Position numbers and translations under genes: made by a program. Of a stretch of 64,000 bases of DNA, positions 4,645-59,362 are shown piece after piece (position 1 is the first letter of the stretch; each line of letters begins with the position of its first letter). The notes below the pieces were generated by a model. The model worked only from the letters and a program-made list of their open reading frames with translations. It did no database searches and was not told where the DNA came from. The DNA is from Macrostomum lignano (lineage: Eukaryota). The stretch is from assembly GCA_002269645.1 (NCBI GenBank), contig NIVC01002444.1:109151-173150 (forward strand), given 5' to 3'.

Positions 4645-5678
4645 TCCCAGAGTCACTTTAATCGTCCCAGAGTCACTTTAATCGTCCCAGAGTCACTTTA
4701 ATCGTCCCAGAGTCACTTTCATCGTCCCAGAGTCACTTTCATCGTCCCAGATGTCACTTTCATCGTCCCAGATGACACTTTCATCGTCCCAGAGTCACTT
4801 TCATCGTCCCAGAGTCACTTTCATCGTCCCAGAGTCACTTTCATCGTCCCAGAGTCACTTTCATCGTCCCAGATGTCACTTTCATCGTCCCAGATGTCAC
4901 TTTCATCGTCCCAGAGTCACTTTCATCGTCCCAGATTCACTTTCATCGTCCCAGAGTCACTTTCATCGTCCCAGATGTCACTTTCATCGTCCCAGAGTCA
5001 CTTTCATCGTCCCAGATGTCACTTTCATCGTCCCAGAGTCACTTTCAGCGTCCCAGAGTCACTTTCAGCGTCCCAGAGTCACTTTCATCGTCCCAGAGTC
5101 ACTTTCAGCGTCCCAGAGTCACTTTCATCGTCCCAGAGTCACTTTCATCGTCCCAGAGTCACTTTCATCGTCCCAGAGTCACTTTCATCGTCCCAGAGTC
5201 ACTTTCATCGTCCCAGATGTCACTTTCAGCGTCCCAGAGTCACTTTCATCGTCCCAGAGTCACTTTCATCGTCCCAGAGTCACTTTCATCGTCCCAGAGT
5301 CACTTTCAGCGTCCCAGAGTCACTTTCAGCGTCCCAGAGTCACTTTCATCGTCCCAGAGTCACTTTCAGCGTCCCAGAGTCACTTTCAGCGTCCCAGAGT
5401 CACTTTCATCGTCCCAGAGTCACTTTCATCGTCCCAGAGTCACTTTCATCGTCCCAGAGTCACTTTCAGCGTCCCAGAGTCACTTTCAGCGTCCCAGAGT
5501 CACTTTCATCGTCCCAGAGTCACTTTCAGCGTCCCAGAGTCACTTTCAGCGTCCCAGAGTCACTTTCATCGTCCCAGAGTCACTTTCAGCGTCCCAGAGT
5601 CACTTTCATCGTCCCAGAGTCACTTTCATCGTCCCAGAGTCACTTTCATCGTCCCAGAGTCACTGTCATCGTCCCAGA
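4645..5678. repeat. 20/21-nt minisatellite (ATCGTCCCAGAGTCACTTTC)n in ATP6V1E intron
   Basis: Visible array of about 50 copies. The overlapping + strand ORFs are translations of the repeat. Confidence 0.96.
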
Positions 5679-7865: not shown

Positions 7866-8021
7866 GCAACCTTGGGATTCACCCGGCCGTTTCTATTGGC
7901 AACACACACACACACATGTAAGTCGCTATTGGACGGAATAGTAGTCACGTGACTGCTCTCAGCCAATAGCGACTTACATGTGTGTTGCCAATAGAAACGG
8001 CCGGGTGATTCCCAAGGTTGC
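7866..8021. repeat. ~155-bp palindrome (MITE-like or promoter module)
   Basis: Arm 7866-7932 is the near-exact reverse complement of 7963-8021, apart from extra CA units and one mismatch. The centre contains the palindrome AGTCACGTGACT. Confidence 0.8.
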
Positions 8022-10029
8022 GCATGTATGCAAGCTAGAATGAGCCCTAAAAATAGATAAGCAGGCACTGTTTTATGGGGGTTCTAGTTGTAGGCTATAT
8101 ATATGTACTTCAAGCTAGAATATTCAAAGACAACTTACATTGATATTAATAAATATAATCAGATAAAAAAATGCCAAAAATTTAATTTACTTTTTTTCTT
8201 TACAATTTTTTAACCTTAATTCTTTTAAATAATTAAAAAGTTGCTAATTATACAAGTTAATTTGATTTTTTTTTCAAATTACAAGCTATGTGCCTTTAGA
8301 TTTATAATCTCCTAAATTAGATTATTAATCTCCTAAAGTAGAGATTTTAATAATCTAATAATATTTTTTTAATAAATTACATAAAATTTAATGCACTGTC
8401 TTGCTTTGGCAGTGAGAGTTAAAGGTGCTGTTTTATGGGGTCACATGCAATAGACAGTTTGATTTGATGCATTTATATATTATATAGTGGATATAATAAT
8501 TTTGGAGCCCAGTTCAAGGCAAAAAACTGAGATTCTAGCAAAGCTTATGGTGCCAATAAAGCCCAGATCAAGGCAAAAAAACTATGAGTCCAACAAAGCT
8601 AATGGTGTCAGTGGAGCCTAGTTTGAAGTTAAAAACAAGAAAAAATAGTTTTCTTAGGAAAAAAGAAAATGAATACTTTGTTGCCAATAATAGTATCAAG
8701 TTATAGTAGCAACTATAACTATAATAATCTAACTATACAACTATATATATATAATACAACTATAATAATCTAATTTTCAGTTTAGATCTATGGCATACCT
8801 GTCATAGTTTGGATCATGTATTTAGTATACACTATGTTTGTACACCGAGACCTTGTTTGTATGCCAATACAAAAAAATTGTCATTTAATACAATGTATTT
8901 ACTATGTCATGTATGCTGGGATATATCTTGATGTATGCTGAAAATGGTAGGACCTGTTATACACTAGGAAATCTAGGCATATATGTTGCTTTCCAAATTA
9001 TGGCATACCTGTGACTATATTTGTTAGGTTTTAGGATCAAAGAAGTGACTTTACATATGATAAAATATACTATATGCAACACAATAAACATGGATTCATA
9101 GAACAAAGAATAAAAGAAACAATTTTAAACTTTGTTCGCTAAAAAACTCTTTTTTTTCTTAATTTTTAGCAAAAAAGTATTTAAAGTACTTTTTAATAAT
9201 TGTTATTTCTTAGTACATATTGCAAAACTGCAACTAAAGTTTGTTATTTTGCAAAAATAATAAATTCAAGAATGAAAAAGTGTACAACTTTGATAAACAA
9301 AGTTAATAACAATTTTTTGTCTTGGGCTACAAATGTAGTTCTGTATCCCCCCCACTAGACTTGGTATATACTAATAATATATATTCAAACTATAGCCTAT
9401 AGCCTATGGTTCCTAGACACTTCGTCACCCACTTTTTGTATGAAAAACTTTGCTATATGTAACATGTATACTTGTAACATGTATACTTATACATGCAACT
9501 ATATAACTATATAAAGATAAACATTAAACATTAAACATGTATATGTATCTACATATAGTCGCCCTCCTCCTTTCACATTCTAGGCTTGGGATTGACCAGA
9601 CAATGGCAGAGTCACAACCCATAAAGATAATTGTTAAATACCATAATTTGTAGCTACATGTAGGCACAAAGATCAAAAAGTTCACAAAGCACAAAGAGAA
9701 TAGCATTAAGACCTATACATTTAATTACTGCAGAATTAATTCGATCTGTTCCTTCCAAATCCATCTAAATCTCTAATATTTGTTTGTTTGTTTGTTTGTT
9801 TGTCTATAATGCTCTAGAGCTTGCAATTCTTCACCAATTTTGATCGCATTTTTACCAAAAGATTCAAAATTGTCTGGAAAGAAGACAGTTAAAATCTCTT
9901 TAATCTGCTTCTAGTGTTGGGCACCATTAATGAAAATCTTAACTTCCATTAATGGAAAAAGCGTTAGCATTAAAACAAAAAATCCTAACTTATTAACTCT
10001 TAATTTCATTAAAGTTAACTGAAAATTAA

Positions 10030-14345: not shown

Positions 14346-15782
14346 CTAGAGCTCGGACCTAACGCCCTCAAACTTGTTAGGCCGTTTCTCGGCGTAGAAT
14401 TTCTCAGCTGCGCGAACAAACGCGCGCACCTCCGAGTTCATTAAGTCGGGCAGTTCGAAAGCGGCAAAGTGACCGCCGTAGTCGAAATCAGCGTAGTGCA
14501 ACAAGTTCGGATTGGTGACCCGGACGAAGCGTTCAGGAACACGGGAGAGCTCGTGGGCCAGGCAAGTCACTCCATACGGCACGTCGGATGGCATTGATTG
14601 ATAAGCTGAGGTAGCTTCCATGTCGCTGCCGAACGACTCCTTGTAAAGCCGCATGGACGAAGTGATGCTGCCAGTGGTCCAGTAGATCATTACATTAGTC
14701 AGAAGCTCGTTCAGGCTGAATGTCGCCTTCAAGCCGACTAGGTTGCCATTTTCGGCAAAAAGATTCTCTGGCAAAGTCCACACGCTGAATTTTTCAATGA
14801 TGTAGGCAGCCAGGCCCACTGGTGAGTCTGACAGGGCGTGGCCTACTGAGTCTGGTCGAGTCGAGTGTAGATGCATGTGCCCCGACTCTCGAATCGTGTT
14901 GCCGAAATTCTCCAGGTAAGGGAAGAGCTTGCCACAGTCCAGCCTGCTGAACAGGACACCTTCTGGCAGGAATGATCCCAGAATCGTCTGGATCATTATC
15001 GACGGCTGACGAACGGGCTGAACAGGCATATTTGTATGAAAGCCGAGCACTCGCTCCGGAAACAATCGAGGCATCACGTGACCGATGACGCTGCCGAAAT
15101 CACCGGCTTGGATGTAATACTGGCGATACCCGAGCCTGACCATCAGCTTGTCGAACACTCGAGCACAGGCAGCGGCACTGAAGCCTCGCTTCTTCGCCGC
15201 TTCGGACCACCCGTATCCCGGAATCGAGGGAGCTACAACTTCGAACGCCAACCCGTCCGTATCTGGAGTCGTCAGCAGTGGAATCAGCTTGTAAAACTCG
15301 AACACTGACCCGGGCCAACCGTGCAAAATCAACAGAGGCACTCGCTTCTTCACCCCCTGCTTCGACGGTTTCAGGTGCATAAAGTGCACTTTTAGTCCTT
15401 CGATCCGAGTGAAATAGTTCGGAAAACTGTTCAGGCGATCCTCCCAGACTCGCCAGTTGTATTTGTTGAGCCAGTGAGACACCAGCTGCTTCATGAAGGC
15501 GCCGTTGAAGCCATACTCGAAGCCGGAGTTCTCGACCGGCTCCACAAACTTGAACGCTTTCAAGCGCGACCTTAAATCGTCGAGTGTTGCATTGCTGACA
15601 GACAGTCTTGTGGCTTCCACCGCTTCGCCGTCGCTGCTTGAGTCGCTCGAGGCACCCCAGTTGAGCGTGGCTGGCAGGGCCGGCTTATCCGGAGCTGCGA
15701 GATTGTCCAGGCAGCCGAGGCCCGCAAGAAGCACGAATGCCAGACAGGCAGTGCAGGCCAGTGGGAGCAGAGTGTTGCACAT
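14346..15782 (-). CDS. EPHX1: Microsomal epoxide hydrolase-like, copy A (478 aa, variant active site)
   Basis: N-terminal hydrophobic anchor, HGWPGS, nucleophile elbow AGDFG, RLYKE, HEL and GGHFAAFE. Intronless ORF. Confidence 0.93.
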   Translation of the reverse strand: MCNTLLPLACTACLAFVLLAGLGCLDNLAAPDKPALPATLNWGASSDSSSDGEAVEATRLSVSNATLDDLRSRLKAFKFVEPVENSGFEYGFNGAFMKQLVSHWLNKYNWRVWEDRLNSFPNYFTRIEGLKVHFMHLKPSKQGVKKRVPLLILHGWPGSVFEFYKLIPLLTTPDTDGLAFEVVAPSIPGYGWSEAAKKRGFSAAACARVFDKLMVRLGYRQYYIQAGDFGSVIGHVMPRLFPERVLGFHTNMPVQPVRQPSIMIQTILGSFLPEGVLFSRLDCGKLFPYLENFGNTIRESGHMHLHSTRPDSVGHALSDSPVGLAAYIIEKFSVWTLPENLFAENGNLVGLKATFSLNELLTNVMIYWTTGSITSSMRLYKESFGSDMEATSAYQSMPSDVPYGVTCLAHELSRVPERFVRVTNPNLLHYADFDYGGHFAAFELPDLMNSEVRAFVRAAEKFYAEKRPNKFEGVRSEL

Positions 15783-17275
15783 TTTTACTCCAATGTCTCC
15801 AAAAGCGTTTCTCTGACTGAGGTTTTAAATGGAAGATTTTCGTATACAGCCTTCGTTCGTGCATTTGCATCAAACCCCCTCAACACAATTACGAGTACGA
15901 GGGTGCAGGCATGAAATCGGGGTGGGCAGATTGCCTTAGTCTGGATAGTACTGTACTTTGCTCTAGTTGTCGGCTTGTGCAGTCTAGCCTTCTATCCTTT
16001 CCTGTTCCTATTTTACAGGGGTTTTGGGAACGTGCGAGTACTTTTTAAACTCATGCTTAAAGCCAACTATCTGCCTCTTGTACGTGCGACTATCCACTGC
16101 CCAAGGCCCCTCCCAAGTTACTGTGTGCCAATAGTAGTGCTTTCGCTCAATCGAGTAAAACATCAGGATGCACTTAGCAATTGCGCAAAACTTCATTGCA
16201 TTTAGAGTCGCGGCGCATTGAGTTTTTGTGTCGTTTTTTCGTGTACTTTCTGAAACACACACATCACAATACGTTGTATATTATTGTGCAGTGAAGTAAC
16301 ACCGGTGCTATTTTACAAGTATACGTATATAAAGGAGTAAGAAGAAATTGCAGCAATGCAGGGTGAGTACACTTCTAGCGCACACAATAACTGTAAGATA
16401 GTACAGTGAGATAGCCAACCAAAAAGTAAAGCTCAGGGCCAAGTTGAGCTGTTATCTATCACTAAACAGAAAACTCTACTCACAAAAAGCAACACGCCCT
16501 ATTTTAATCAGCCAAAACAGCGATTGAAGAAAGAGTTAAACAGAAAATCTTCCATTTAAAACCTCGGTCAGAGAAACGCTTTTGGAGACATTGGAGTAAA
16601 AATGTGCAACACTCTGCTCCCACTGGCCTGCACTGCCTGTCTGGCATTCGTGCTTCTTGCGGGCCTCGGCTGCCTGGACAATCTCGCAGCTCCGGATAAG
16701 CCGGCCCTGCCAGCCACGCTCAACTGGGGTGCCTCGAGCGACTCAAGCAGCGACGGCGAAGCGGTGGAAGCCACAAGACTGTCTGTCAGCAATGCAACAC
16801 TCGACGATTTAAGGTCGCGCTTGAAAGCGTTCAAGTTTGTGGAGCCGGTCGAGAACTCCGGCTTCGAGTATGGCTTCAACGGCGCCTTCATGAAGCAGCT
16901 GGTGTCTCACTGGCTCAACAAATACAACTGGCGAGTCTGGGAGGATCGCCTGAACAGTTTTCCGAACTATTTCACTCGGATCGAAGGACTAAAAGTGCAC
17001 TTTATGCACCTGAAACCGTCGAAGCAGGGGGTGAAGAAGCGAGTGCCTCTGTTGATTTTGCACGGTTGGCCCGGGTCAGTGTTCGAGTTTTACAAGCTGA
17101 TTCCACTGCTGACGACTCCAGATACGGACGGGTTGGCGTTCGAAGTTGTAGCTCCCTCGATTCCGGGATACGGGTGGTCCGAAGCGGCGAAGAAGCGAGG
17201 CTTCAGTGCCGCTGCCTGTGCTCGAGTGTTCGACAAGCTGATGGTCAGGCTCGGGTATCGCCAGTATTACATCCA
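15109..17275. repeat. Palindrome: 733-bp arms (15109-15841, 16543-17275) around a 701-bp spacer
   Basis: The first ~225 aa of both proteins are identical and antisense shadow ORFs translate identically. One visible mismatch lies in the 5' UTR (CCTCAGTC vs CCTCGGTC). Confidence 0.92.
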
Positions 17276-18032
17276 GGGTGGCGACTGGGGAGCCGGCATT
17301 GGTCACATAATAACAAGAGAGTTTCCGGAGCGAGTGCTCGGCTTCCATACCAATATGCCGATGCAGCCATTCCGACAGCCATCAGTGATCGTACAGATGA
17401 TCGCCGGATCGTTCTTACCTGACGGTATCCTGTTTAGCAAGAAGGACGGACAAAAAATATTTCCCTACTTTGAAAAGCTGAGCGACATCATCCGTGAGAG
17501 CGGGTACATGCACATTCAAGCCACTCGGCCGGACACCATCGGGCACGCCTTGTCGGACTCGCCAGTGGGTTTGGCTGCCTACATTCTTGAGAAGTTTAGC
17601 GTTTGGACAGATCCGCAAAATAGGCTTTCCCAGACTGGCAACCTTATCGGCCCGAAGGCGGCCTTCAGCCTGGACGAGCTGCTGACCAATGTAATGATCT
17701 ACTGGACCACTGGCAGCATCACTTCGTCCGTGCGGCTGTACAAGGAAGTTTTTAGTGAGAATAGGGAAACTACGATGGCCTACTTCTCCATCCCGTCAGA
17801 TGTTCCGCACGGAGTCGCAAGCTTCTCTAACGAGCTTTCTCGGGTGCCCGAACGCATCGTACGAGTTACCCATCCCAACCTGCTACACTACGCTGACTTC
17901 GATCACGGCGGTCACTTTGCCGCTTTTGAACTGCCTGACTTGATGAACTCAGAGGTGCGCGCGTTCGTTCGCGCAGCTGAGGACTTCCACGCCAAGAAAC
18001 GGTCGCCACTGGGTGAAGGCAAAGAGCTTTGA
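16602..18032 (+). CDS. EPHX1: Microsomal epoxide hydrolase, copy B (476 aa, canonical active site)
   Basis: HGWPGS, GGDWG, ESGYMHIQ, RLYKE, NEL and GGHFAAFE all present as in the EPHX1/JHEH family. Confidence 0.95.
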   Translation: MCNTLLPLACTACLAFVLLAGLGCLDNLAAPDKPALPATLNWGASSDSSSDGEAVEATRLSVSNATLDDLRSRLKAFKFVEPVENSGFEYGFNGAFMKQLVSHWLNKYNWRVWEDRLNSFPNYFTRIEGLKVHFMHLKPSKQGVKKRVPLLILHGWPGSVFEFYKLIPLLTTPDTDGLAFEVVAPSIPGYGWSEAAKKRGFSAAACARVFDKLMVRLGYRQYYIQGGDWGAGIGHIITREFPERVLGFHTNMPMQPFRQPSVIVQMIAGSFLPDGILFSKKDGQKIFPYFEKLSDIIRESGYMHIQATRPDTIGHALSDSPVGLAAYILEKFSVWTDPQNRLSQTGNLIGPKAAFSLDELLTNVMIYWTTGSITSSVRLYKEVFSENRETTMAYFSIPSDVPHGVASFSNELSRVPERIVRVTHPNLLHYADFDHGGHFAAFELPDLMNSEVRAFVRAAEDFHAKKRSPLGEGKEL

Positions 18033-18966: not shown

Positions 18967-21900
18967 TTAGTAAATCCCTGTAGGCCGCAGCGAGGGTCTG
19001 GGGCCTTTTGCGTCTGCCAGGAGGATCGTCAGCGCGTCCAACAGCTCTTCTCGGCTCAGCCGGTTCGCAGAGGAGCTGGATGTCCTAGTGCCGCTAGCCT
19101 CGTGACCAACATCCTCGCCCACCATTAGGCCTAAGCGGGTCCTGTCGTTGCGCAATCCGATAGCCTGGTTGATTAGGTAGTGCACCAACACATCCGGATC
19201 GAACAGGTCCATCTTGACCCGCACCGGGCTGCTCGGTGCCCAACGGCCGAGGCCGGTGACGAGAAGTTCGCGCAATACGTCCAAAATGTTGAGCGGTGGT
19301 GATAGGGCTGAGTAGTTCTCGTACTCGTTGACGAAGGCGAACCTCTCGAACTGCCACAGAGCTCGACTGTTACTATCGATCTCGTCAATTGTCTTGGAAA
19401 AGAGCGCAACAATGAGGCTTAAAAGCAAAATGGTGGTGATGATTATGTAAATCGGTAGCAGGATGTAGGGCACGACGAATACAGCATCCGGGTGCGGACA
19501 GTTGAGGCTTGTGTTTTGGCGAGCTTCAAACACCTGGGCGCATTCGCTTCCAGTCATCTGGTCTAGGTGGTACTCGCCAAACATACTGTAGAAGCAAATA
19601 TGAAGCACATGCCTGACGACTTCAGACATGCTGAGTTGGTTTGGGTTGTAGGCAAAGAAACCGTTCGGATGCATTAAAGACGTCATGAAGATGCCAAATC
19701 CAAACAGATAGATGAATAGGATGTATAGAAATGGCAGCAGGTCTTTGATGATCATAGTAGACATCATGGTGAGCTTCGGGCCAAAGTAGGCATTCACGCG
19801 TGCAATGTTGAGCAGCTTCACCCACATGAGAAGACAGGCCAGCCCGTAAAAGAAACGGGCACAGAACCATACATGATTCTCAAATAGTTCGGTAAACGTC
19901 TCCGGGGTCTCCTCCCGCAAGGCCATTGTAAGACGAAGGATGAAGGCAGTAATCATGAAGAGGCACGCAAAGCCGTCAACTATGTTCCATTTGTTTGAAC
20001 CATACTCGTGGAAGCTGTCGTGCCAAAGCGACAGACCGAGCTCTCGCAGCTCCTCGATGATGAAGCCTAACGCGATTATGTAAGCACAAACCTCCAGTGG
20101 TGAAATTGTCCAGTTGAAGTCAATCAACACAGTGTAGGACATAATTAGAATCAGCGTCACGTGACTCATTGTAAAGTAGCGAAACTTAACACTCGGGATG
20201 TGGTAGAAGCAGTACAGCAGGCCGATGAATATTTGTAGCTTCGCTTTCACAGACTTCCTCGAGCCAAATATTCGCTCTCCGCTAAAGTCGTTGTCAAACA
20301 TGGTCGTCGCCGGTCCCGTATCTTCATGCAAGGCGAAGCTCTCGTTGCTTCCCATGCTGCCCTGAATGGTTGCATCATTCTGCTTCTGCTTCTGTTTCAG
20401 CTGCGGCTGCTGTTGTTCAACCCGTGAAGAAGCGCGGCCACCGTCATAAGCGTACAAGAGAATCGCCAAGAGAGGATTCATTGGGATGATGCCCATGATG
20501 ACTGCGAATTCCCGCAGCCAAGGGTTCATATTGCAAAGAAAGCGCTGCCAGGTGATGTCCATGGCCTTCTGACAGACGTCCAAACGAAGAAAGGAGTCGC
20601 ACTGACAGTTAGCCGCTAGATGAATGCAGCTCAAATTTCCGAATTCCGGCATGCTCTGCAATAGGTATTGGTAGGTCACCCACTTGTCCTCACTCATATC
20701 AACTTGAACTGCCTTGGTGAGTGCATCACAGGCAACGCGTTCACACTGGTCGGCAAGGTCAGTAACGGCAGGCAGCTGCAAGGCATCAATTTCCAAGACA
20801 GTGTTGAGCTTCCTAAGAATTCCGGCGGACAAAACGCAAAGAGGAACGATTTCGAACTGCGTCTTTCGCAGGAAAGCAAGGGTCAGATTGAACCTGCCAG
20901 TAAGAATGCTCCAAACAGCTAGCGTCTCGACTGGATTGTTTATTTGCAGCGTATCTTTTCCAGACTCTCGAACGTCATCACCGGCTGATGGGGGGCTCAT
21001 GCCAATGCATTTGGCCACCCGCTGGTTGAGCTTGCGAAGATTAAATGCCTGCCGCTTACCTCCTATCGTACCTGTGCCCGAATCCATAAAACAGGTGTAA
21101 AACTGCTTGCTTATAATGCTGGCATCCCTGTTGGTGTTGTTATAAAGAGTAGAAATGTGGTCTTCAAGAAACCCGCTCACTCTGTCCCAGAGAACGCCAC
21201 ATTTCATTACATCATTAAGTGCAGAAATATCCTCACGAAACAGGATGTACTTGGTTGTGAAGATTGCAATTGTGTCGATGATCTCACGATTTTCCGAGTA
21301 TCTGTGAATCGCGTTGGTCTTCAGGGCAGCCATCAGAATAGTTTGGAACTCGATCACATCCTGTAGGTTCTCCTCATCAAGATCCAGCAACTCGTCGACT
21401 AGCTTCATCTCTTCAGCTGGGTCTCCGACTGTGTTGTAGTAGCAACGACGGCTCTCCGAGTCGATGAGCTGCAGCAAGCACAGGAATTCCTGAAAGCCGC
21501 GGCTCCTGTAGAGATCCTGCGGCTTGGTCACCTTAGTGTCAGAAGACACGCGATCGGTAAAATGGCGAATCAGCTCGCGCAGCGTGCCGCGATTCTTGTT
21601 GCTCATCATGACGTCGATTGCGGTACGGCCGTCCGTAGTTTCCCGATCGACTGTAGCACCATGGTCTAGCAGCAGCTTCATTAGCGTGATGTTCTGATTG
21701 GCAACTGCAATGTGCAATGGCGTCTTGCCGTCAGCATCCTGAGCATTTATGAGTTCTGGCGCTGCTCCCAGCACGAGACCTGCGTGTTCTTGTAGGTCGT
21801 TTATGCAGGCTCGGTGCAGTGGTGTCAGCTGGGCCTGATCAACCAGGCTGGCATCGGCGCCGTGGCTTAATAGTAGCTCAAGGAGCACAGTGGAGCTGTC

Positions 21901-22461
21901 AGAGCACGCTTTGTGCAGCAAATAGTCCCCGGTGGGTAGTGCAACGTTTGGATTGGCGCCCTGCTCGAGTAGGAAAGCCACTGTTCCGGCCACATCGGGT
22001 CCTGATAGCGCATAGTGTATCGGTATGAAGCCGGCCGTGTTGGGTCGATTAATCTCAGCCCCTTGATCTAGGGCAATCTCTAGCAGTTTGATCTTGCTTA
22101 GAGCAGCTGCAACGTCGCTTAGACGCATGGCTTCATGCAGTTCCAAGTCGATTACCTTGGGATTGGCAAAACGTTTCAATGCCTCGATGTCATCGTCCAT
22201 GATAGCTTGATACAGCAGTTCGGCTATGTTAGGTTGGGTCTCTACAGGTTGGATCACGGCATCGGAGTCCGCCCTCTCAGTTTCTGGCTCCCTGTCGTCT
22301 GCTTCTGGCCTGTCTTCCGTCACCTGGGGCGCGGTGGAATCGCGACGCTTTGTGGTTAGTCGGGTGCCGAAAAATCGCAGGTTGCCGAAGCCCAACTTTT
22401 TATTCGTCTTCTTTTTCGAGCCGAAGAAGCCCTTGTCTTGAGACTCCGGTGGCGACGACAT
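18967..22461 (-). CDS. TRPM-like cation channel with N-terminal canonical ankyrin repeats (1164 aa from first ATG)
   Basis: About 6-7 ANK repeats (e.g. GKTPLHIAVANQNITLMKLLLDHGA), an MHR4-like block (LAVWSILTGRFNL; FGNLSCIHLAANC), 6 TM segments, GPKLTMMSTMIIKD, pore YSMFGEY and TRP box WQFER..EY..PP. The ORF-track GTG at 22500 straddles an acceptor-like TTTCTTTGACCATCTAG. Confidence 0.88.
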   Translation of the reverse strand: MSSPPESQDKGFFGSKKKTNKKLGFGNLRFFGTRLTTKRRDSTAPQVTEDRPEADDREPETERADSDAVIQPVETQPNIAELLYQAIMDDDIEALKRFANPKVIDLELHEAMRLSDVAAALSKIKLLEIALDQGAEINRPNTAGFIPIHYALSGPDVAGTVAFLLEQGANPNVALPTGDYLLHKACSDSSTVLLELLLSHGADASLVDQAQLTPLHRACINDLQEHAGLVLGAAPELINAQDADGKTPLHIAVANQNITLMKLLLDHGATVDRETTDGRTAIDVMMSNKNRGTLRELIRHFTDRVSSDTKVTKPQDLYRSRGFQEFLCLLQLIDSESRRCYYNTVGDPAEEMKLVDELLDLDEENLQDVIEFQTILMAALKTNAIHRYSENREIIDTIAIFTTKYILFREDISALNDVMKCGVLWDRVSGFLEDHISTLYNNTNRDASIISKQFYTCFMDSGTGTIGGKRQAFNLRKLNQRVAKCIGMSPPSAGDDVRESGKDTLQINNPVETLAVWSILTGRFNLTLAFLRKTQFEIVPLCVLSAGILRKLNTVLEIDALQLPAVTDLADQCERVACDALTKAVQVDMSEDKWVTYQYLLQSMPEFGNLSCIHLAANCQCDSFLRLDVCQKAMDITWQRFLCNMNPWLREFAVIMGIIPMNPLLAILLYAYDGGRASSRVEQQQPQLKQKQKQNDATIQGSMGSNESFALHEDTGPATTMFDNDFSGERIFGSRKSVKAKLQIFIGLLYCFYHIPSVKFRYFTMSHVTLILIMSYTVLIDFNWTISPLEVCAYIIALGFIIEELRELGLSLWHDSFHEYGSNKWNIVDGFACLFMITAFILRLTMALREETPETFTELFENHVWFCARFFYGLACLLMWVKLLNIARVNAYFGPKLTMMSTMIIKDLLPFLYILFIYLFGFGIFMTSLMHPNGFFAYNPNQLSMSEVVRHVLHICFYSMFGEYHLDQMTGSECAQVFEARQNTSLNCPHPDAVFVVPYILLPIYIIITTILLLSLIVALFSKTIDEIDSNSRALWQFERFAFVNEYENYSALSPPLNILDVLRELLVTGLGRWAPSSPVRVKMDLFDPDVLVHYLINQAIGLRNDRTRLGLMVGEDVGHEASGTRTSSSSANRLSREELLDALTILLADAKGPRPSLRPTGIY

Positions 22462-25400: not shown

Positions 25401-26119
25401 GCGGCAGATGGGCTGCGAGGATGCCGATCCCCTTCTCTTCATCCCAGAGCCGTCCCGGCTCTAAAGCCAGCCAGTTCTGATGTCCGCGAGATTTTCCTCG
25501 CTATCGCATAATGCTGACTGATGCTTCCTAGTTTGATGAGGGATGAGAGGCAGCTGGGAAATGAGCCCGGCGAGGGGGGTTTTGCCTAGTCGATGTCTAC
25601 CAGAGATGCCAGTGTGTTGAAGCTCTTCAGACCGGGAGTCTCGTAGTAACACTTCTCTTCTCAATATTTTCGCGAAAGTAATTTTCCTCGCTAGGGCTCG
25701 GTCTCGCTCAGATCAGCAGCATGGCGCCACCAAACTGTGTTGACAAACTGTGTTCGATCTGCAGTGTAAGATTGATAGCAGCACGCACTCCTTTTCTAAT
25801 CTTATACTGTATCGCACTGACTTCCACTCGCTCTCTTGGCAATTAGGTAACTTTCGGCACCTTTTGGTTTTGGATTTCGGGAGCGCTAATCTAATTTCCG
25901 AACAAGGAACACTAGTAGAGCATGTTTCTGCTTGCCGAATTGTTCGGGTAAAGGCAAGAGAGATTTTGTATTTCTGCTTTGCCGTTAGTTTTTAGCAAAC
26001 ATAATCCAGAAATAAGAGCTATCTATTGATAAAGTTACCTTTGCATTTGCTTGCAAATATTTCTTGCTTATTTTTTTCGGTAACAAAAATAAAGGGTACA
26101 CACATGTAGAGCAGTGCAA

Positions 26120-27160
26120 GGGTAACTAGATGTGTTCAAGGGTGTCTAGATGACTGCAATGGTGTCTAAATGAGTGCAAGAGTATCAGATGAGTGCGAGG
26201 GTATCTAGATGAGTGCAAGGGTATCTAGATGAGTGCAAGGGTGTCTAGATGAGTGCGAGGGTATCTAGATGAGTGCAAGAGTATCTAGATGAGTGCAAGG
26301 GTATCTAGATGAGTGCGAGGGTATCTAGATGAGTGCAAGAGTATCTAGATGAGTGCAAGGGTATCTAGATGAGTGCAAGGGTATCTAGATGAGTGCAAGG
26401 GTGTCTAGATGAGTGCAAGGGTATCAAGATGAGTGCAAGGGTATCTAGATGAGTGCAAGGGTATCTAGATGAGTGCGAGGGTATCTAGATGAGTGCAAGA
26501 GTATCTAGATGAGTGCAAGGGTATCTAGATGAGTGCGAGGGTATCTAGATGAGTGCAAGAGTATCTAGATGAGTGCAAGGGTATCTAGATGAGTGCAAGG
26601 GTATCTAGATGAGTGCAAGGGTGTCTAGATGAGTGCAAGGGTATCAAGATGAGTGCAAGGGTATCTAGATGAGTGCAAGGGTATCTAGATGAGTGCAAGG
26701 GTGTCAAGATGAGTGGAAGGGTATCTAGATGAGTGCAAGGGTATCTAGATGAGTGAAAGAGTATCTAGATGAGTGCAAGGGTATCTAGATGAGTGCAAGG
26801 GTACCTAGATGAGTGCAAGGGTGTCTAGATGAGTGCAAGGGTATCTAGATGAGTGCAAGGGTATCTAGATGAGTGCAAGGGTATCTAGATGAGTGCAAGG
26901 GTGTCAAGATGAGTGCAAGGGTATCTAGATGAGTGCAAGGGTATCTAGATGAGTAAAAGAGTATCTAGATGAGTGAAAGAGTATCTAGATGAGTGCAAGG
27001 GTATCTAGATGAGTGCAAGGGTATCTAGATGAGTGCAAGGGTATCTAGATGAGTGCAAGGGTATCTAGATGAGTGCAAGGGTGTCTAGATGAGTGCAAGG
27101 GATCTAGATGAGTGCAAGGGTGTCTAGATGAGTGCAAGGGTATCTAGATGAGCGCAAGCA
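26120..27160. repeat. 20-nt minisatellite (GTATCTAGATGAGTGCAAGG)n
   Basis: Visible array of about 50 copies with a degenerate left edge. Confidence 0.96.
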
Positions 27161-27677
27161 AGGGTATTATTAGTCGAGGCTTCTTTACCTTGAAATTTTG
27201 CGCCCTCCAGGGTAAACGCAATGCTGGAGTCAATCCCACTTGGTTGAAGATGGCAAGTAAGATCCCATTTTGGAGTGACGTATGCTTAGGTTAGATCGAT
27301 GGTTAGATATGTCAGTTGCTCAACTCGCCTATGAAGCCAATTCAGACAATTCAATTGATTAGCGGTCACTGGGATTGCAGATAAGCGGCATTGGATTTTC
27401 TGCTGTCACAAAAATATCAATCAGTCTCCACTGGAGATGAGGAAATATGGAAATTTTTAGTCAGGGTCACAAAATTTGCCTGGAAATTCATTAACGAAAT
27501 TGATTTTTTTCAACTTTATTTTATAGTTGGCATAAATTACAGTGGGTGAAGTTTTACCCGAAACAACCTCCGCGTGGCAATTAGCCAATTTGACTAGATG
27601 GATAGAGAGAGCTGCAGCTCTGCTAGAATCAGAGGCAGGGCGAAGCCGCAACCCCAGATCGGCTGGAAAAAGTGATG

Positions 27678-28530
27678 GCGCCCCTTGCAGTAGCTTTGGC
27701 GCTTATGGAACTGGCGCCCCTTGCAGTAGCTTTGGCGCTTATGGAACTGGCGCCCCTTGAAGTAGCTTTGGCGCTTATGGAACTGGCGCCCCTTGCAGTA
27801 GCTTTGGCGCATATGGAACTGGCTCCCCTTGTAGTAGCTTTGGCGCTTATGGAACTGGCTCCCCTTGTAGTAGCTTTGGCGCTTATGGAACTGGCTCCCC
27901 TTGTAGTAGCTTTGGCGCTTATGGAACTGGCTCCCCTTGAAGTAGCTTTGGCGCTTATGAAACTGGCTCCCCTTGTAGTAGCTTTGGCGCTTATGGAACT
28001 GGCTCCCCTTGAAGTAGCTTTGGCGCATATGGAACTGGCTCCCCTTGTAGTAGCTTTGGCGCTTATGGAACTGGCGCCCCTTGAAGTAGCTTTGGCGCTT
28101 ATGAAACTGGCGCCCCTTGTAGTAGCTTTGGCGCTTATGGAACTGACGACCGTTGCAGTAGCTTTGGCGCATATGGAACTGACGACCGTTGCAGTAGCTT
28201 TGGCGCTTATGGAACTGGCGCCCCTTGAAGTAGCTTTGGCGCTCATGGAACTGGTTCCACTTGAAGTAGCTTTGGCGCTTATGGAACTGGCGCCCCTTGA
28301 AGTAGCTTTGGCGCTTATGGAACTGGTTCCACTTGAAGTAGCTTTGGAGCTTATGGAACTGGCGCCCCTTGAAGTAGCTTTGGCGCTTATGGAACTGGTT
28401 CCACTTGAAGTAGCTTTGGCGCTTATGGAACTGGCTCCCCTTGAAGTAGCTTTGGCGCTTATGGAACTGGCGCCCCTTGAAGTAGCTTTGGCGCTTATGG
28501 AACTGGCGCCCCTTGCAGTAGCTTTGGCGC
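27678..28530. repeat. 36-nt minisatellite (GCGCCCCTTGAAGTAGCTTTGGCGCTTATGGAACTG)n
   Basis: About 23 copies. Unit length is a multiple of 3, which explains the long ORFs on both strands. Confidence 0.95.
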
Positions 28531-28569
28531 CTCTGTTACTGGCGCACAGTCAAATTAAATAGCGCCATG

Positions 28570-36539: not shown

Positions 36540-36655
36540 CTGCTCGAGAACAGTTTTTGGCTGCAGGCTTTAATCTACAATTTGCTACTAAAAGTAGATA
36601 ATTTCGAATCTGATTTAAATCAATTTTAAAAAAATTGTCTCTGTGAATCTTCAAC

Positions 36656-37210
36656 CTGAAAGTAGTCGCCGCATTTTGTACTGCCGCGCATGAAGATGTC
36701 GAAGAACTCATCCCAGCCTCCGGGCCATGGCCCGAACAGCGGCATGCCGGTGTAGAACTTGTACAGAGAGTTGCAGCAGTCCTTCGGATTGCGGGCCACG
36801 ACGATCACTTTTGGCGCGGCTTCATCCAGCCGGTTCTTGATGAACGAATACGGGCAGTGAGTCTTGATGAGGCGCACAGACTCCTGCGGCGCGCTCTCCA
36901 GCAGGTCGATGGGCATAGGCAGCTCTGCGTCGCCCTGCCAGCGCGGGTTGAACTCGAGGAACGGGAACCGCTCGTCGATGTCCGGGAACTTCTCGCCGGC
37001 GCTGATTCGCTCCCGGTTGAGAATCTCCCAGACAATCTCCTGCACCAGGGTGGTGCCGCTGCGTGGAAAAGTGCACACGCAGATGTCGCTTGGCCGGAAG
37101 CGGAAGTCCTCGCAGCGACGCACAAGCTCGGGCGTGGTGTAGTTGTTCCACACGATGCCCTTGTAGACGAACTCGCCAGTGCACTGCGTTAGATTCGTTG
37201 ATTTCTCCAT
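36656..37210 (-). CDS. Cytosolic sulfotransferase (SULT1-like), exon 1
   Basis: 5'-PSB TFPRSGTT, catalytic IKTH and 3'-PB RNPKDCCNS. Donor CAG|GTTGAA at 36655, phase 0. Confidence 0.92.
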
Positions 37211-44850: not shown

Positions 44851-47800
44851 CCACCAGTCCCCCGATGGCGATGCCGCTGCATGCCAACATAAGTAGTTAA
44901 TCGATTCACTTTTAGAGCCTATAAAACTTAAGCAATTAAACATTAATCTTTTACATAGTAATATTTCTATGTTAAATTGGCACGGAGGGTAGCCTACATG
45001 GAGATTACCGGTATATGTATATAATAAATAGTAAAGAATTACTTACTTTTCTGGCTGGCGTCTTTTGTTGTCTTTACGGTACCCTCAGTTGTGAAGCTTA
45101 AATTGCAGTATAACAAAGTATGCCTGCTACTGAATTATACAAAATGTTACACGGTGAATTACTGGACGAAAATTGAACTGTTAGTTAATTGCATTTTTTA
45201 ATATGCACTGAATAACTCTTCACTGAAGTTTTTTGGAAAAGCGAGTAAAACTTAACTAAGTACTTTTACGTAATTTTTAGATTAAAGCTACAAATAATTA
45301 AATTTGTACCCTGTCTAATACTGCTATGTATCATTAGTGCATTTTCTTTTTTAGGCGCTAAGAAAATTAAAAAATTTCATAATGTTTTTATGACCTACCT
45401 ATAAAGCAACATAACAATAAACTTATTCCTTACAAGCTTATTTCCTATTTCATTAGTAGGCCTATTCCAGACAATACTTTCAAATACTGGTTGATTGTTA
45501 ATTTGTTTCTGTCTTTTTATTTTCAATCCTTTGTTTTTAGGAACCCTTAGTTCATAATGTAATAAATAAGGCAAGCTTTAGTATCATTGTTGTTAAGTAG
45601 GGCTAGATATATATTTGTGTTTAGAATTAAAAATCCTGACTTCTTTCTCTTCAATTGAACTACTTTAAGTTTTGTTCTAGCATTTTGCCAATGGCAATAG
45701 ATCCAGGTCTTTATTAATAAGTATCACAAATAGTAAAATATAATAAATAAATATAAAAGCTAAATAATACGAATATTTTTTGTAATATAAAAGTTTTACA
45801 TATTATATTTGATTCTTATTTGATCTATATCATCTTAATTGTTAAATTAACTTTCTATATTGATTATTGTCTTTACTATTGGCATTCATTGTTTTTTTAT
45901 CATGTCTAAAACTGTTTATATTTCTCTATTTTATTGTTAAGAAAATATTTTGACAAACTAAAGTATCTTTGTTTCTAAAAATGTCTAACCTTTAACTAAA
46001 TAATTTTAAGATAATAAAATAAATTTTGTTTGATTATGTTAGCTTTTGTTTTGATAAATTTCAATTTGTAACAATTTATACCATGCTTGTCTACTAATCA
46101 TTATATATAACTTTATTGCTAGTAACTAAACTAGTTTTTTTAGTTTTATTCTTAATAGAGCTTAGACAAATACATAGTTAGGATTTTTAAGATTTTTTAT
46201 TTTCTAACAATAATTAGAGATGTTCCAAAATTTCAATTTCAATTTAGATTTTCCACATTTTGTAATTTTTAGGAGTAATTTATTTACATAAAAGTAAATT
46301 AGGAACAAAATCATAAATTTCAAGTGTCAAGTTCCAAAGAAATCTATCTAATCTCAATATTTTTTAACTTCTTTACTGTTTCAAATCAGATTTTATTATA
46401 TTTTTAAAAACATAGATCTATATTTGTTAAAACTATTTTATATATGTCTATAGCATGTTTGTAGAACTATATATTTTCATTAGGCCTAATGTTGCAGAAC
46501 TTAAAAGCTTTTTGCTGATATATTGTGTATTTTGCACATATTACAATATATTTAAGATACATATACATGTGTAGTTTACACAATTGCAATTTTGCTATTC
46601 ATCAGTGATACATGTACATTAACCTAACATACATTGAGTGATACTATACATAGAAGATGTGAGAGAGCAAGAGAAGGTGCCATGCATAGAGAAGACTATA
46701 TGCAATGGGGGTTACATGTACATGTCTATCCTTTGCATATAGTTGTCCATTTGCTTGCATGATACTATAAAACTGCATAATACATATGTGATTCATATTT
46801 TTTTCATAACTTGATTCTTGCTAGCTGAGTCCTGGCAATATTGTTGGAATTATCCTTTCATATAGTTACCACTTAAATATCAGACTACATTATATATAAA
46901 TGTGTACCCATGCCAATAGCAGGGGGGTATAACTAGATGTTATTGTTTTCTTAGCAAAAAAGTATTTGAATTCAAAGTAGCAATGATAAGGAACTCTAAT
47001 TATCCAGTGGCTGAAATATAATATTTTATGCTACATGTATTTTGTTTTGCATGAGCAATAAATCAAAAGTTAAAAAGCAAGTCATACTAAAATTTTTTCT
47101 GAATTTAAATTTCAGAAAATTTTGATTTCAATTTTGATTTTAGAAAGTAGTAAATTTTTATTTTGACAAAAATGCACTTTTGGAAAATCTCTAAATATAA
47201 TATGCATGAGATTTAGAGATATATTAATTGTCTATAAATTTATATTGTATCTGTTTTTCAATATGGAAACATTTAGAATTAATAAGTTAAACTATAAAAC
47301 AATATAATGGATATTAGAATGATTGGATTACATTGGTTCTAGCATGATCACAATAAGTTACAGAGTTAAATATACTAGTATTTAATAGGATATAATAGGG
47401 TAAATAATTCTAGGAATCTGAAAAGATTAAGAAATTTTGCTTCTCCCAAAGATAGGAAATTATAGATATGTTAGGAGGTTTTTAGACAATAGATAGATAT
47501 ACTAGATAGTGGTTACAGGAGCACATATTTTCTATATGAAGTTTTCATATTTAGTTTATTCAATAACTTGAAATACTATTAGAACCATTGATTTGATGGG
47601 TAGGGATAAAGCAAGAGAAATAAGGTTAAGGACTCAAGTAACAGGGATTTTTGACACTATATACACATTGGGATTTGGACAGTAGGGGCCTAAGTTAAGA
47701 TGTATATTTTCACTTTCAATGCAAGTGGAGCTCTTGAAGTAAAAAAATGATTTGTTATTGCTGCACTTTTTAAAATTAAGACTAAATTGGGGTTTGATAG

Positions 47801-47951
47801 ACAAATAAAATACAATCTTGAATACTAATTGCAAGATTGAGATGTGACTCCTATTAAAAATATTATGCACATCAAAGTTTCTGTGAAAAAAACTGAGCTT
47901 TTTGATAATCCTGTATAGTTTCTATATCCACTATGCCTGGCCACACCGCAG

Positions 47952-48224
47952 ATGCTCGCTGCAAGGAATCGTGCCGCTATTCTAATCAGCAAATCGCTGA
48001 TGGGCACCAGCATGTCAGTGCGCACTAAAGTTCTCAGTTTGGACACGATGAACCCGAATGTAAAGAATATTGAGTACGCTGTTCGTGGACCAATTGTAGC
48101 CAGAGCTGCCGAGATTGAGAAAGAGCTTAAATCGGGCCAAAAGAAGCCATTTAATGAGGTCATCAAGTGCAATATTGGCGACTGTCATGCCATGGGACAG
48201 CCGCCGCTCACATTTTTGAGACAG
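47952..48224 (+). CDS. GPT: Alanine aminotransferase, exon 1
   Basis: [17 protein letters not shown]...[28 protein letters not shown], then donor CAG|GTATTT. Confidence 0.94.
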
Positions 48225-48836: not shown

Positions 48837-49268
48837 GTGACCGCACTGCTGGCTGACTCGAGCCTATTCAAATCCAATCTGTACCCGGATGACGCCAAAC
48901 AGCGAGCGGCTCGAATTCTTGACGACTGCGGTGGTCAAAGTGTTGGCGCCTACAGCCACGCCTGCGGTGTGAGCGTCATCCGGGAGGACTGCGCCAAGTA
49001 CATTGAGTCACGCGATGGCGGGGTGCCAGCCAATAGTGACGATATTTTTCTGTCCACGGGTGCTAGCGAGGCTGTCAAATCTATCCTAGAGCTCCTATCT
49101 ACAGGTAAAGAAGGTCGCGACCAGGTTGGGATTATGATCCCTATACCGCAGTATCCTTTGTACACGGCAACTATTAGCCAGTACAATCTGCGCGCCGTGC
49201 CGTATTATCTGAATGAGGCTGACAACTGGAGTCTGAGCATTAAAGAGCTGCGCCGAGCTTACGAGGAG
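48837..49268 (+). CDS. GPT: Alanine aminotransferase, exon 2
   Basis: Acceptor gccaag|GTG. VTALL...GAYSHACG...IFLSTGASEAV...MIPIPQYPLYTAT...ELRRAYEE, then donor GAG|GTGAGT. Confidence 0.94.
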
Positions 49269-49374
49269 GTGAGTGTTTTTATACTTCTTACTGGGCCCAT
49301 TGCTGCTGTTGTCTCAGTGTCCGGCTCCGAAAGATTAAAAGAGAAAAAGCCACTATCCATGAGCCATACCTGCG

Positions 49375-49625
49375 CACCTGGAAATAGCACCTCCGTCTCT
49401 ATCTGTGCATCTGGAAATAGCGCCTCCGTCTCTATCTGTGCACCTGGAAATAGCGCCTCCGTCTCCATCTGTGCATCTGGAAATAGCGCCTCCGTCTCTA
49501 TCTGTGCACCTGGAAATAGCGCCTCCGTCTCTATCTGTGCATCTGGAAATAGCGCCTCCGTCTCCATCTGTGCATCTGGAAATAGCGCCTCCGTCTCTAT
49601 CTGTGCACCTGGAAATAGCGCCTCC
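49375..49625. repeat. 33-nt minisatellite in GPT intron 2
   Basis: (CTGGAAATAGCGCCTCCGTCTCTATCTGTGCAC)n, about 8 copies. Confidence 0.92.
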
Positions 49626-49689
49626 CTCTCTACCAGTGCACCTTTGAAAAGTTACGTGGAGATGGCGCCACCCTCTCAAGGCACCGAGT

Positions 49690-50675
49690 AGATATGGTGA
49701 CACCCTCTCAAGGGTAGATATGGTGACACCCTCTCAAGGGTAGATATGGTGACACCCTCTCAAGGGTAGATATGGTGACACCCTCTCAAGGGTAGATATG
49801 GTGACACCCTCTCAAGGGTAGATATGGTGACACCCTCTCAAGGGTAGATATGGTGACACCCTCTCAAGGGTAGATATGGTGACACCCTCTCAAGGGTAGA
49901 TATGGTGACACCCTCTCAAGGATAGATATGGTGACACCCTCTCAAGGGTAGATATGGTGACACCCTCTCAAGGGTAGATATGGTGACATCCTCTCAAGGA
50001 TAGATATGGTGACACCCTCTCAAGGGTAGATATGGTGACACCCTCTCAAGGGTAAATATGGTGACACCCTCTCAAGGATAGATATGGTGACACCCTCTCA
50101 AGGGTAGATATGGTGACACCCTCTCAAGGGTAGATATGGTGACACCCTCTCAAGGGTAGATATGGTGACATCCTCTCAAGGATAGATATGGTGACACCCT
50201 CTCAAGGGTAGATATGGTGACACCCTCTCAAGGGTAAATATGGTGACACCCTCTCAAGGATAGATATGGTGACACCCTCTCAAGGGTAGATATGGTGACA
50301 TCCTCTCAAGGATAGATATGGTGACACCCTCTCAAGGGTAGATATGGTGACACCCTCTCAAGGGTAGATATGGTGACATCCTCTCAAGGATAGATATGGT
50401 GACACCCTCTCAAGGGTAGATATGGTGACACCCTCTCAAGGGTAGATATGGTGACACCCTCTCAAGGGTAGATATGGTGACACCCTCTCAAGGGTAGATA
50501 TGGTGACACCCTCTCAAGGGTAGATATGGTGACACCCTCTCAAGGGTAGATATGGTGACACCCTCTCAAGGGTAGATATGGTGACACCCTCTCAAGGGTA
50601 GATATGGTGACACCCTCTCAAGGGTAGATATGGTGACACCCTCTCAAGGGTAGATATGGTGACACCCTCTCAAGG
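49690..50675. repeat. 26-nt minisatellite (AGATATGGTGACACCCTCTCAAGGGT)n in GPT intron 2
   Basis: About 38 near-perfect copies. Confidence 0.96.
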
Positions 50676-50728
50676 CACTGGGTAGATACAGAAACGTATA
50701 CTGTAGAAAACTCGCCACCCCGATGAAG

Positions 50729-50920
50729 GCCGCTCCCAGCTGCCGTCCGCGCGGCCTGGTGGTGATCAACCCCGGCAACCCGACTGGCCAGGTGCTGCGC
50801 CGCGAGATCATCGAGGAGGTGTTGCAATTCGCCAAGGAGAAATCGCTGTTTGTTCTCGCCGACGAAGTCTATCAGCACAATGTTTACGCTGAGGGTGCCA
50901 AGTTTTTCAGCTTCAAGCAG
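50729..50920 (+). CDS. GPT: Alanine aminotransferase, exon 3
   Basis: AAPSCRPRGLVVINPGNPTGQVL...LADEVYQHNVY...FFSFKQ, then donor CAG|GTGAGA. The acceptor (gatgaag|GCC) is the only in-frame candidate seen and is slightly uncertain. Confidence 0.9.
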
Positions 50921-59211: not shown

Positions 59212-59362
59212 CTGGGCAATGAAAGTGATGGGGGAATCGTTGGATGCTAAAAATGCCTTACTGGCGCCCTGTACTATAGACATTATATCTGCGCTGTATA
59301 TTAGTTAGTTTATAGTTAGAGCCAGGGGGCTGTGTGCAACCTCGCGCACTTTAAGTGACATT

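Follow-up and report, generated by a model that had tools for sequence, protein, structure and literature searches.

The meclonazepam target of Schistosoma mansoni (Smp_333650), named TRPM_MCLZ, has been cloned from complementary DNA (cDNA) and, on expression in HEK293 cells, gives rise to inward currents and Ca2+ signals (Park et al., J Biol Chem 2024, PMC10788528). The protein, of 1380 amino acids (aa) encoded by three exons, is without the MHR1/2-SLOG region and carries ankyrin-repeat modules instead (Sprague et al., Front Parasitol 2024, PMC11731825). A later study listed 63 TRPM_MCLZ orthologues from trematodes, monogeneans and cestodes, suggested the group name "TRPM-like" and reported that the channel exon is present twice (3a/3b) in Clonorchis, Opisthorchis and Paragonimus (Rohr et al., IJP-DDR 2026, PMC12861061). 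Even among orthologues, only those of a subset of schistosome species respond to (S)-meclonazepam (PMC12861061). The drug pocket of the S. mansoni channel consists of H827/H831/Y864/E868/R943/H946/Y1117, with a spacing of 4/33/4/75/3/171; within it, H831 (S1), R943 (S4) and Y1117 (TRP) are conserved in all or nearly all of the 63 orthologues (PMC12861061). In the literature searched, TRPM_MCLZ has been discussed for parasitic flatworms only, and we found no mention of TRPM_MCLZ-type genes in free-living flatworms. Here, we describe a relative of this group in the free-living flatworm Macrostomum lignano, located on the minus strand of a 64,000-nucleotide stretch of contig NIVC01002444.1, which is referred to as the window.

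An intact single-exon gene

The gene occupies exactly 18967-22461 (-) of the window from ATG to stop, in a single open frame of 1164 codons with 0 internal stops. The open reading frame (ORF) had been listed as 1177 aa because an upstream GTG was accepted as start, and it measures 1164 aa from the first ATG. The product was identical at 1120 of 1124 residues (99.6%) to the GenBank entry "hypothetical protein BOX15_Mlig023207g1" (P0001), which carries the UniRef label "TRPM-like domain-containing protein".

A second copy was found on contig NIVC01002524.1 of the same assembly (GCA_002269645.1; locus L001), likewise as a single exon (3405 nucleotides, nt) and with the same epoxide-hydrolase neighbours. 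Over 3369 nt the two copies showed 7 synonymous and 3 non-synonymous differences, a small sample that leans toward purifying selection. In addition, a 1-nt indel at about window position 19092 (codon 1124; GG in the window, G in L001) shifts the frame, so that the last ~40 residues differ and the product is 1164 aa in the window and 1134 aa in L001. The indel may distinguish alleles or homeologues or may reflect an error of assembly, and it affects the poorly conserved tail alone. Taking the evidence below into account, we consider it likely that the gene is intact, probably functional and intron-less, and that its product serves as a subunit in a tetrameric cation channel of the flatworm TRPM-like/TRPM_MCLZ-type group.

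Ankyrin repeats in the position of the SLOG module

We analyzed the domain architecture of the product using Pfam and an AlphaFold2 model built from a family alignment of 21 sequences (mean predicted local distance difference test score, pLDDT, 71; predicted template modelling score 0.65). Pfam identified ankyrin families (Ank_2, E=1.4e-19; Ank_4, 5e-18; Ank_3, 6e-16; with Ank and Ank_5, an overall span of 1e-12 to 1e-19). The array consists of 5 near-consensus repeats and 2 capping repeats, and its modelled helices run from 79-88/92-98 through 281-287/291-306 with a period of ~33 residues and pLDDT of 80-92. A sequence-only reading of the window had placed ankyrin repeats at ~21570-22220 and joined them to a TRPM-type core; the Pfam matches and the 7 modelled repeats (22227-21544) bear out the first point, and the second is confirmed by the presence of both parts in one exon and one continuous frame.

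The ankyrin array occupies the position of the MHR1/2 (SLOG) nucleotide-binding module of ordinary TRPMs. In the Pfam scan at E<=0.1, the product had no SLOG (LSDAT_euk; PF18139/PF18171), NUDIX/NUDT9H or kinase family, whereas SLOG scored 75-276 bits in canonical flatworm TRPMs scanned in the same way. Used as a phmmer query, the N-terminus of Lingula TRPM2 was matched in 80 canonical sequences and in 0 of the ankyrin-bearing family members. The earlier statements that MHR1/2 (SLOG), NUDT9-H and kinase domains are missing, and that ankyrin repeats replace the N-terminal ligand-binding module, agree with these results, as SLOG is absent and the array lies directly before the probable MHR3-like region and MHR4.

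The linker that follows the array had no sequence match in the PDB, in canonical MHR3 or in the linker of the parasite relatives (subclade B, see below) by hhalign or by the family profile against the PDB, for which MHR4 was the sole region matched. However, a separate model of linker and MHR4 (pLDDT 76.6) matched TRPM structures only (280-400 aligned columns of 366; TMq 0.4-0.52), and the linker is therefore probably a highly divergent MHR3-like domain, as judged from predicted fold.

The MHR4-like domain was recognized by Pfam PF25508, "TRPM2-like domain" (E=5e-7, 30.6 bits with a cutoff of 27, residues 512-638 in 1177-aa numbering), and over this region the family profile matched TRPM8 (2e-12), TRPM2 (9e-11) and TRPM7 (1.5e-8) in the PDB. 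LAVWSIL (aa 514-520), ADQCERVA (570-577) and GNLSCIHLAA (608-617), previously singled out as TRPM-diagnostic, lie inside the PF25508 match and the alignment with nvTRPM2. The low-complexity loop between MHR4 and the pre-S1 helix differs in length between paralogues.

In the channel core, whose S1-S4 make up the voltage-sensor-like domain, we located E804/E807 in S2, N826/D829 in S3, K882/N885 in S4 and LLLSLIVALF in S6. The S4-S5 linker GPKLTMMSTMIIKD (aa 894-907) aligned with GPKLVMIQKMMQD of nvTRPM2, and LWQFERF..NEY..PPL (aa 1035-1060) with VWKFQRY..QEY..PPL, so that the S4-S5 linker and the WQFER..EY..PP segment of the TRP domain are both present where they had been reported. The pore helix and filter read SMFGEYHLD, with MYGELFLDE as the nvTRPM2 counterpart (FGE here, YGE there). 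The C-terminal tail is modelled with helices at 1058-1074, 1089-1102 and 1138-1149, pLDDT being <50 from 1113; no NUDT9H or kinase was found in it by Pfam, and no long coiled coil (pole helix) was predicted, the model being of low confidence after 1113.

Affinity of the channel core

The transmembrane (TM) core is TRPM-like, not TRPN-like. With the ankyrin-less query, all 60 of the 60 sequence matches listed from the PDB were TRPMs, headed by nvTRPM2 (6co7; 127 bits) and TRPM3 (115 bits) and followed by TRPM1, TRPM7, TRPM8, TRPM5, TRPM4 and TRPM2. The 6co7 alignment spans MHR4 to the TRP helix (query 523-1074, 1177-aa numbering) and covers all three MHR4 motifs. When phmmer was run with the TM region alone, canonical TRPMs scored 96-142 bits and three NOMPC sequences 27-36 bits, which upholds the view that the TM domain does not fall inside TRPN. 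In a Foldseek search with the full model, TRPM structures took 49 of the top 50 places, with NOMPC (5vkq) second.

We rejected TRPN identity, since the full-length PDB score of NOMPC is due to ankyrin repeats, the TM-only score drops to the values above, and the product has 7 repeats, not ~29. On domain content, membership in TRPS (soromelastatin) was also rejected, since TRPS has SLOG and Nudix and no ankyrin, and the product is the reverse on all three. With regard to the features that define classical TRPMs, MHR1/2 (SLOG) is absent, MHR4 is recognizable by sequence, MHR3 is supported by predicted fold, and the TM core and TRP box are closer to TRPM than to TRPN, the two families compared directly.

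Relatives and phylogeny

To identify relatives, we used several types of search. In word-index searches the full protein was drowned in generic ankyrin proteins, and the ankyrin-less core or a 10-sequence alignment gave only three M. lignano proteins. An exhaustive HMMER search with the ankyrin-less core against 1.84 billion representatives resulted in 1183 matches at E<=0.001. The best-ranked proteins combined ankyrin repeats, PF25508 and Ion_trans, and never SLOG. Among the top 150, the ankyrin-without-SLOG design was restricted to flatworms or samples of unknown origin. Members with a named source came from M. lignano, Opisthorchis, Dicrocoelium, Schistocephalus and Fasciolopsis, the last two carrying the source annotation "TRPM7". 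Further members came from sequence collections: P0136 (Logan run DRR639838), P0130 (Logan), P0149 (ENA) and P0141/P0168 (MetaClust only). P0136 and P0130 have Phe at the TRP position, elsewhere reported only for Gyrodactylus; that they come from Gyrodactylus is a guess.

The M. lignano members formed 11 clusters at 50% identity and carried 18 Mlig gene identifiers, some of which are surely homeologues of the polyploid genome. The paralogue closest to the window gene (P0002; 51% identity) is intact and occurs as a single exon in two contigs. Both copies of P0002 (L002:3001-6444, L003:3001-6444) fall entirely within the span of an oppositely oriented gene model of 3230-3240 aa, and are presumably nested in one of its introns.

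We then constructed neighbour-joining trees from TM-only and MHR4+TM alignments, using Kimura-type or gamma distances, with and without an outgroup. All M. lignano sequences, including the window gene, formed subclade A (bootstrap 96-100%), and the parasite sequences together with source-unnamed ones formed subclade B (87-99%). When NOMPC and two fragments were removed, the unrooted trees separated A+B from all SLOG-bearing TRPMs at 97-100%. Cross-scoring with hidden Markov models (HMMs) gave a consistent picture: B sequences scored a median of 343 bits against the A model, compared with 239 and 263 against two canonical TRPM models, and A sequences scored 340 against the B model, compared with 300 and 308, so that A and B were reciprocally highest. 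Subclades A, B and A+B are thus robust, whereas their placement relative to the TRPM subgroups is not.

The S. mansoni sequence (UniProt A0A5K4FCC0) was outside the tree set, and subclade B was recognized through pocket spacing and the exon 3a/3b duplication. In Dicrocoelium P0134 (1378 aa), the pocket reads H,H,Y,E,R,Y,Y with a spacing of 4/33/4/75/3/167. At the variable S4 position, Dicrocoelium (a fluke) has Y, the cestode has F and the second channel copy of Opisthorchis P0128 has H, which are the three variants of PMC12861061. The Opisthorchis viverrini gene models P0128 and P0296 contain two MHR4+channel modules in tandem (TM domains 684-992 and 1360-1676 in P0128); because these tandem channels match the published 3a/3b duplication (probably mutually exclusive exons), the models fuse alternative exons. 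Judged from these sequence features, subclade B is the TRPM_MCLZ group.

The replacement of SLOG by ankyrin repeats has been published since 2023, and the window gene is a free-living-flatworm relative within a sizeable paralogous expansion. The sequence-only reading had proposed either a lineage-specific domain swap or an unrecognised TRP subfamily. The "lineage-specific" part fits, because ankyrin repeats without SLOG were seen only in flatworms or samples of unknown origin among the top 150, but the subfamily had already been described (PMC10788528, PMC11731825, PMC12861061). Similarly, its premise that animal TRPMs lack canonical ankyrin repeats reflects the general view of the literature (PMC7306681), to which flatworms are a published exception. 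The window gene is part of subclade A, an expansion specific to Macrostomum. On the simplest reading, this expansion is co-orthologous to TRPM_MCLZ, and the design then predates parasitism, being at least as old as the common ancestor of Macrostomorpha and Neodermata.

Comparison with described channels

TRPM_MCLZ resembles the window gene in having N-terminal ankyrin repeats instead of MHR1/2-SLOG, no NUDT9H, a TRPM-type MHR4, S1-S6 and TRP helix, a low number of introns or none (three exons in S. mansoni, a single one here) and pocket residues at matching spacing, and the cores are reciprocal nearest relatives. The two differ in host, which is parasitic for TRPM_MCLZ and a free-living macrostomid here, and in copy number, since TRPM_MCLZ is handled in the papers as one gene for each parasite species, whereas M. 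lignano has 11 clusters at 50% identity. They also differ in length (1380 aa vs 1164 aa), in the TRP box (WLA[DE]RY in the TRPM_MCLZ group, WQFER here) and in the filter (an IFEVS-type loop in subclade B, FGEY here). Identity between the product and subclade B was 21-22% in full-length alignment and 25-29% from MHR4 to the TRP helix.

Canonical TRPMs (nvTRPM2 6co7, TRPM3, TRPM7, TRPM8, TRPM4/5) share with the product MHR4, pre-S1, S1-S6, the GPKL motif of the S4-S5 linker and the TRP helix, as well as five Ca2+-site positions, an FGE-type filter and the overall fold. In contrast to them, the product has ankyrin repeats rather than SLOG/MHR1-2, an MHR3 unrecognisable by sequence, no predicted long coiled coil and no NUDT9H or kinase, and identity in structural alignments was ~15-18%. 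TRPN/NOMPC (5vkq) also has N-terminal canonical ankyrin repeats followed by a six-TM TRP core and TRP helix, but it has 29 repeats instead of 7 and no MHR4. TRPS (ced-11-like; Himmel et al. 2020), compared by description only, is likewise TRPM-related, outside classical TRPM and divergent in its TRP domain; unlike the product, it has SLOG and Nudix and no ankyrin (PMC7306681).

Ca2+ site, drug pocket and possible mechanism

From homology, four subunits would assemble into a non-selective, divalent-permeable cation pore. Gating would be controlled by the S1-S4/TRP-helix cavity, where TRPM8 binds menthol and TRPM_MCLZ binds meclonazepam, and the ankyrin ring may contribute to assembly or to binding of partners or the cytoskeleton. 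The Ca2+ positions E893/Q896/N918/D921/E1110 of nvTRPM2 correspond in alignment numbering to E804/E807/N826/D829/E1046 here. Because these five positions are near-invariant in the family, Ca2+-dependent gating of the window channel is plausible on sequence grounds. Control by ADP-ribose or nucleotides via SLOG or NUDT9H is ruled out because both domains are absent.

In the meclonazepam pocket, the equivalents of H831 (H767), E868 and Y1117 (Y1047, by spacing) are kept, and four positions are changed: H827F, Y864F, R943K (K882) and H946N (N885). With F, F, K and N at these positions, the product cannot be taken to be sensitive to meclonazepam. Among the aligned M. lignano paralogues, only the window gene and P0002 have K at the R943 position, the others having R, and the S4 pair is K..N in these two and R..Y in the other paralogues. 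In the alignment, K882 suggests membership in a paralogous subclade rather than strict orthology.

Origin of the design and alternative explanations

Several points weigh against assigning the window gene to the TRPM_MCLZ group. First, only two of the three (almost) invariant TRPM_MCLZ residues are kept (H767 and Y1047), R943 being K882, and the Asn of the S6 LLLNL motif is replaced by Ser. Second, the trees were neighbour-joining only, and A+B as a rooted clade reached just 34-56% when NOMPC and the two fragments were included; this instability stems from the root and the rogue fragments, not from the split. Third, the ankyrin regions of subclade A, subclade B and the TRPMs that carry ankyrin repeats together with SLOG showed no more than generic ankyrin similarity by phmmer, hhalign of the ankyrin/linker regions of A and B gave a probability of 2%, and the comparison of the two linkers was not significant. 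Fourth, the trees and the direct comparison of TM cores covered TRPM and TRPN (NOMPC) among the TRP families. Finally, the identifier Mlig023207 is not named in the literature searched.

Since A and B show no specific similarity in their ankyrin repeats or linkers, the case for a single origin of the ankyrin fusion is built on the channel-core tree together with the order of domains common to both. Used as a query, the N-terminus of B ranked generic ankyrin proteins above subclade A. The window gene and P0002 have 1 exon each and P0121 has three, compared with at least 19 over 19 kb in a canonical M. lignano TRPM (0-2 introns vs at least 18). An intron-poor family is compatible with a retroposed channel module or origin, or with massive intron loss. 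An intact SLOG preceded by ankyrin repeats occurs in some canonical flatworm TRPMs, namely M. lignano P0139 (L005:501-19647), Clonorchis P0138 and Opisthorchis P0316 (Ank_2 32.9-37.3 bits, cutoff 27.3); for M. lignano P0305, this design is based solely on a 48-bit phmmer match to the N-terminus of P0139. A possible route is therefore an ankyrin-SLOG-MHR3/4-TM intermediate that subsequently lost SLOG to give the TRPM_MCLZ type. The restriction of the ankyrin-without-SLOG design to flatworms favours an event on the flatworm stem.

An alternative is that A+B is the surviving sister of all SLOG-bearing TRPMs (perhaps also of TRPS), having kept the ankyrin repeats of the ancestral group-1 TRP while SLOG was gained and ankyrin lost on the other branch. 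One large survey found ankyrin repeats absent from both TRPM and TRPS (PMC7306681), and their loss before the TRPM-TRPS split was inferred without sampling Platyhelminthes (PMC7306681, PMC13143021), an inference that an early-branching flatworm lineage of this kind would, if true, overturn. The NOMPC-rooted trees indeed placed A+B outside all sampled SLOG-bearing TRPMs rather than nested in flatworm TRPMs, A+B plus flatworm TRPMs grouped at 0-46% only, and an unplaced 488-aa fragment (P0150) joined A+B in the MHR4+TM tree. However, the clade of all SLOG-bearing TRPMs had a bootstrap of just 2-24%, and fast flatworm sequences combined with a very long outgroup branch are a classic setting for long-branch attraction. 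Moreover, MHR4, and probably the MHR3-like fold too, is common to TRPMs, and a design limited to flatworms and samples of unknown origin among the top 150 would require losses in every other phylum. We regard this deep origin as unlikely.

Somewhat less probable still is that subclades A and B gained their ankyrin arrays independently, so that the window gene would resemble TRPM_MCLZ in design only. The lack of specific similarity between the ankyrin/linker regions of A and B (hhalign 2%) would be expected in this case, and flatworm TRPMs seem prone to gaining ankyrin repeats, as the SLOG-bearing examples from M. lignano, Clonorchis and Opisthorchis indicate. Ankyrin repeats, however, are constrained to a consensus and quickly lose lineage-specific signal. 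In their channel cores, A and B are mutually closest, both lack SLOG and NUDT9H, and both have the same order of ~6-7 repeats, a ~180-370-residue linker and MHR4, all of which weighs against independent gain.

That the gene is an assembly or annotation chimera, or a recently inactivated, unexpressed retrocopy, is very improbable: although its intron-less structure is retrocopy-like beside the at least 19 exons of a canonical M. lignano TRPM and a 1-nt indel close to the 3' end separates the two copies, the long ORF is open in both with synonymous differences outnumbering non-synonymous ones, ankyrin repeats and channel share one continuous frame and so do not depend on a join between gene models, P0002 is also intact and single-exon, many other paralogues retain the whole architecture, and the schistosome relative was cloned from cDNA.

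Implications for flatworm channel biology

TRPM_MCLZ is a validated anthelmintic target, and its ankyrin-for-SLOG design is now found in a free-living, genetically tractable flatworm. RNA interference and transgenesis exist for M. lignano, which would offer a laboratory system for finding what activates this orphan channel type in the animal and which physiological role it has. The schistosome relative is neuronal and muscular. On the simplest reading, the design is not an adaptation to parasitism, because it is at least as old as the ancestor of Macrostomorpha and Neodermata. The S1-S4 drug pocket varies naturally across the 11 divergent paralogue clusters. Surveys of TRPM and TRPS that omitted Platyhelminthes concluded that TRPMs are ankyrin-free, and flatworms also have TRPMs with both ankyrin repeats and SLOG. 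The main relevance of the gene is therefore to flatworm channel pharmacology and TRPM domain evolution.

Features of the window

The coordinates of the gene, its domains and its neighbours are listed in Table 1.

Table 1. Positions of the channel gene, its predicted domains and the adjacent epoxide hydrolase genes in the window
Feature	Position	Strand	Basis or remark
Complete single-exon coding sequence, TRPM-like channel subunit	18967..22461	-	1164 codons + stop; near-identical to M. lignano BOX15_Mlig023207g1
Disordered basic/acidic N-terminal segment, aa 1-77	22231..22461	-	pLDDT <50, no secondary structure
Ankyrin repeat domain, 7 helix-pair repeats, aa 79-306	21544..22227	-	Pfam, PDB ankyrin/DARPin matches, AlphaFold2 model
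Helical linker, aa 307-497	20971..21543	-	All-helical in AlphaFold2 model; probably MHR3-like by fold
MHR4-like domain, aa 498-656, with LAVWSIL, ADQCERVA, GNLSCIHLAA	20494..20970	-	PF25508, family profile vs PDB, nvTRPM2 alignment
Low-complexity Q/K-rich loop, MHR4 to pre-S1, aa 657-736	20254..20493	-	pLDDT <50 over 682-736; gapped in family alignment
Pre-S1 helix and S1-S6 channel core, aa 738-1020	19402..20250	-	nvTRPM2 alignment, TM-only phmmer, model helices
TRP helix and TRP box, aa 1025-1060, LWQFERFAFVNEYENYSALSPPLNIL, including E1046 and Y1047	19282..19389	-	Aligned to nvTRPM2
Short C-terminal tail, aa 1061-1164	18970..19281	-	AlphaFold2 model; no Pfam match
Epoxide hydrolase gene 1	14346-15782	-	478 aa
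Epoxide hydrolase gene 2	16602-18032	+	476 aa

The two epoxide hydrolase genes are intron-less and lie in a head-to-head inverted duplication (window 14382-15841 and 16543-18002). Their products are 85% identical overall. Because the first ~225 residues are identical and the remainder far less so, gene conversion of the 5' halves is suggested. In the L001 copy of the locus, the second epoxide hydrolase model has only 346 aa.

Elsewhere in the window, exon-sized ORFs at 36626-37210 (-), 48837-51814 (+) and 58131-61192 (-) matched a sulfotransferase (E=9e-29), two class I/II aminotransferase fragments and an Integrator subunit 4-like protein (INTS4_C + HEAT). Long minisatellite arrays were located at 53473-57209, 26113-27158, 4645-5678, 49688-50675, 27676-28545, 828-1466 and 2027-2583, with units that include a 47-bp repeat present 81 times (3.7 kb, 97% matches), 20-bp repeats present 52 and 51 times, a 26-bp repeat present 38 times and a 36-bp repeat present 24 times. 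The composition profile owes its strong GC-skew blocks to these arrays, and the one at 4645-5678 overlaps an ORF with a weak, probably spurious match to Vma22/CCDC115. AT-rich stretches (27-33% GC) occur at 8001-10000, 46001-48000 and 62001-64000, the window otherwise having 42-64% GC.

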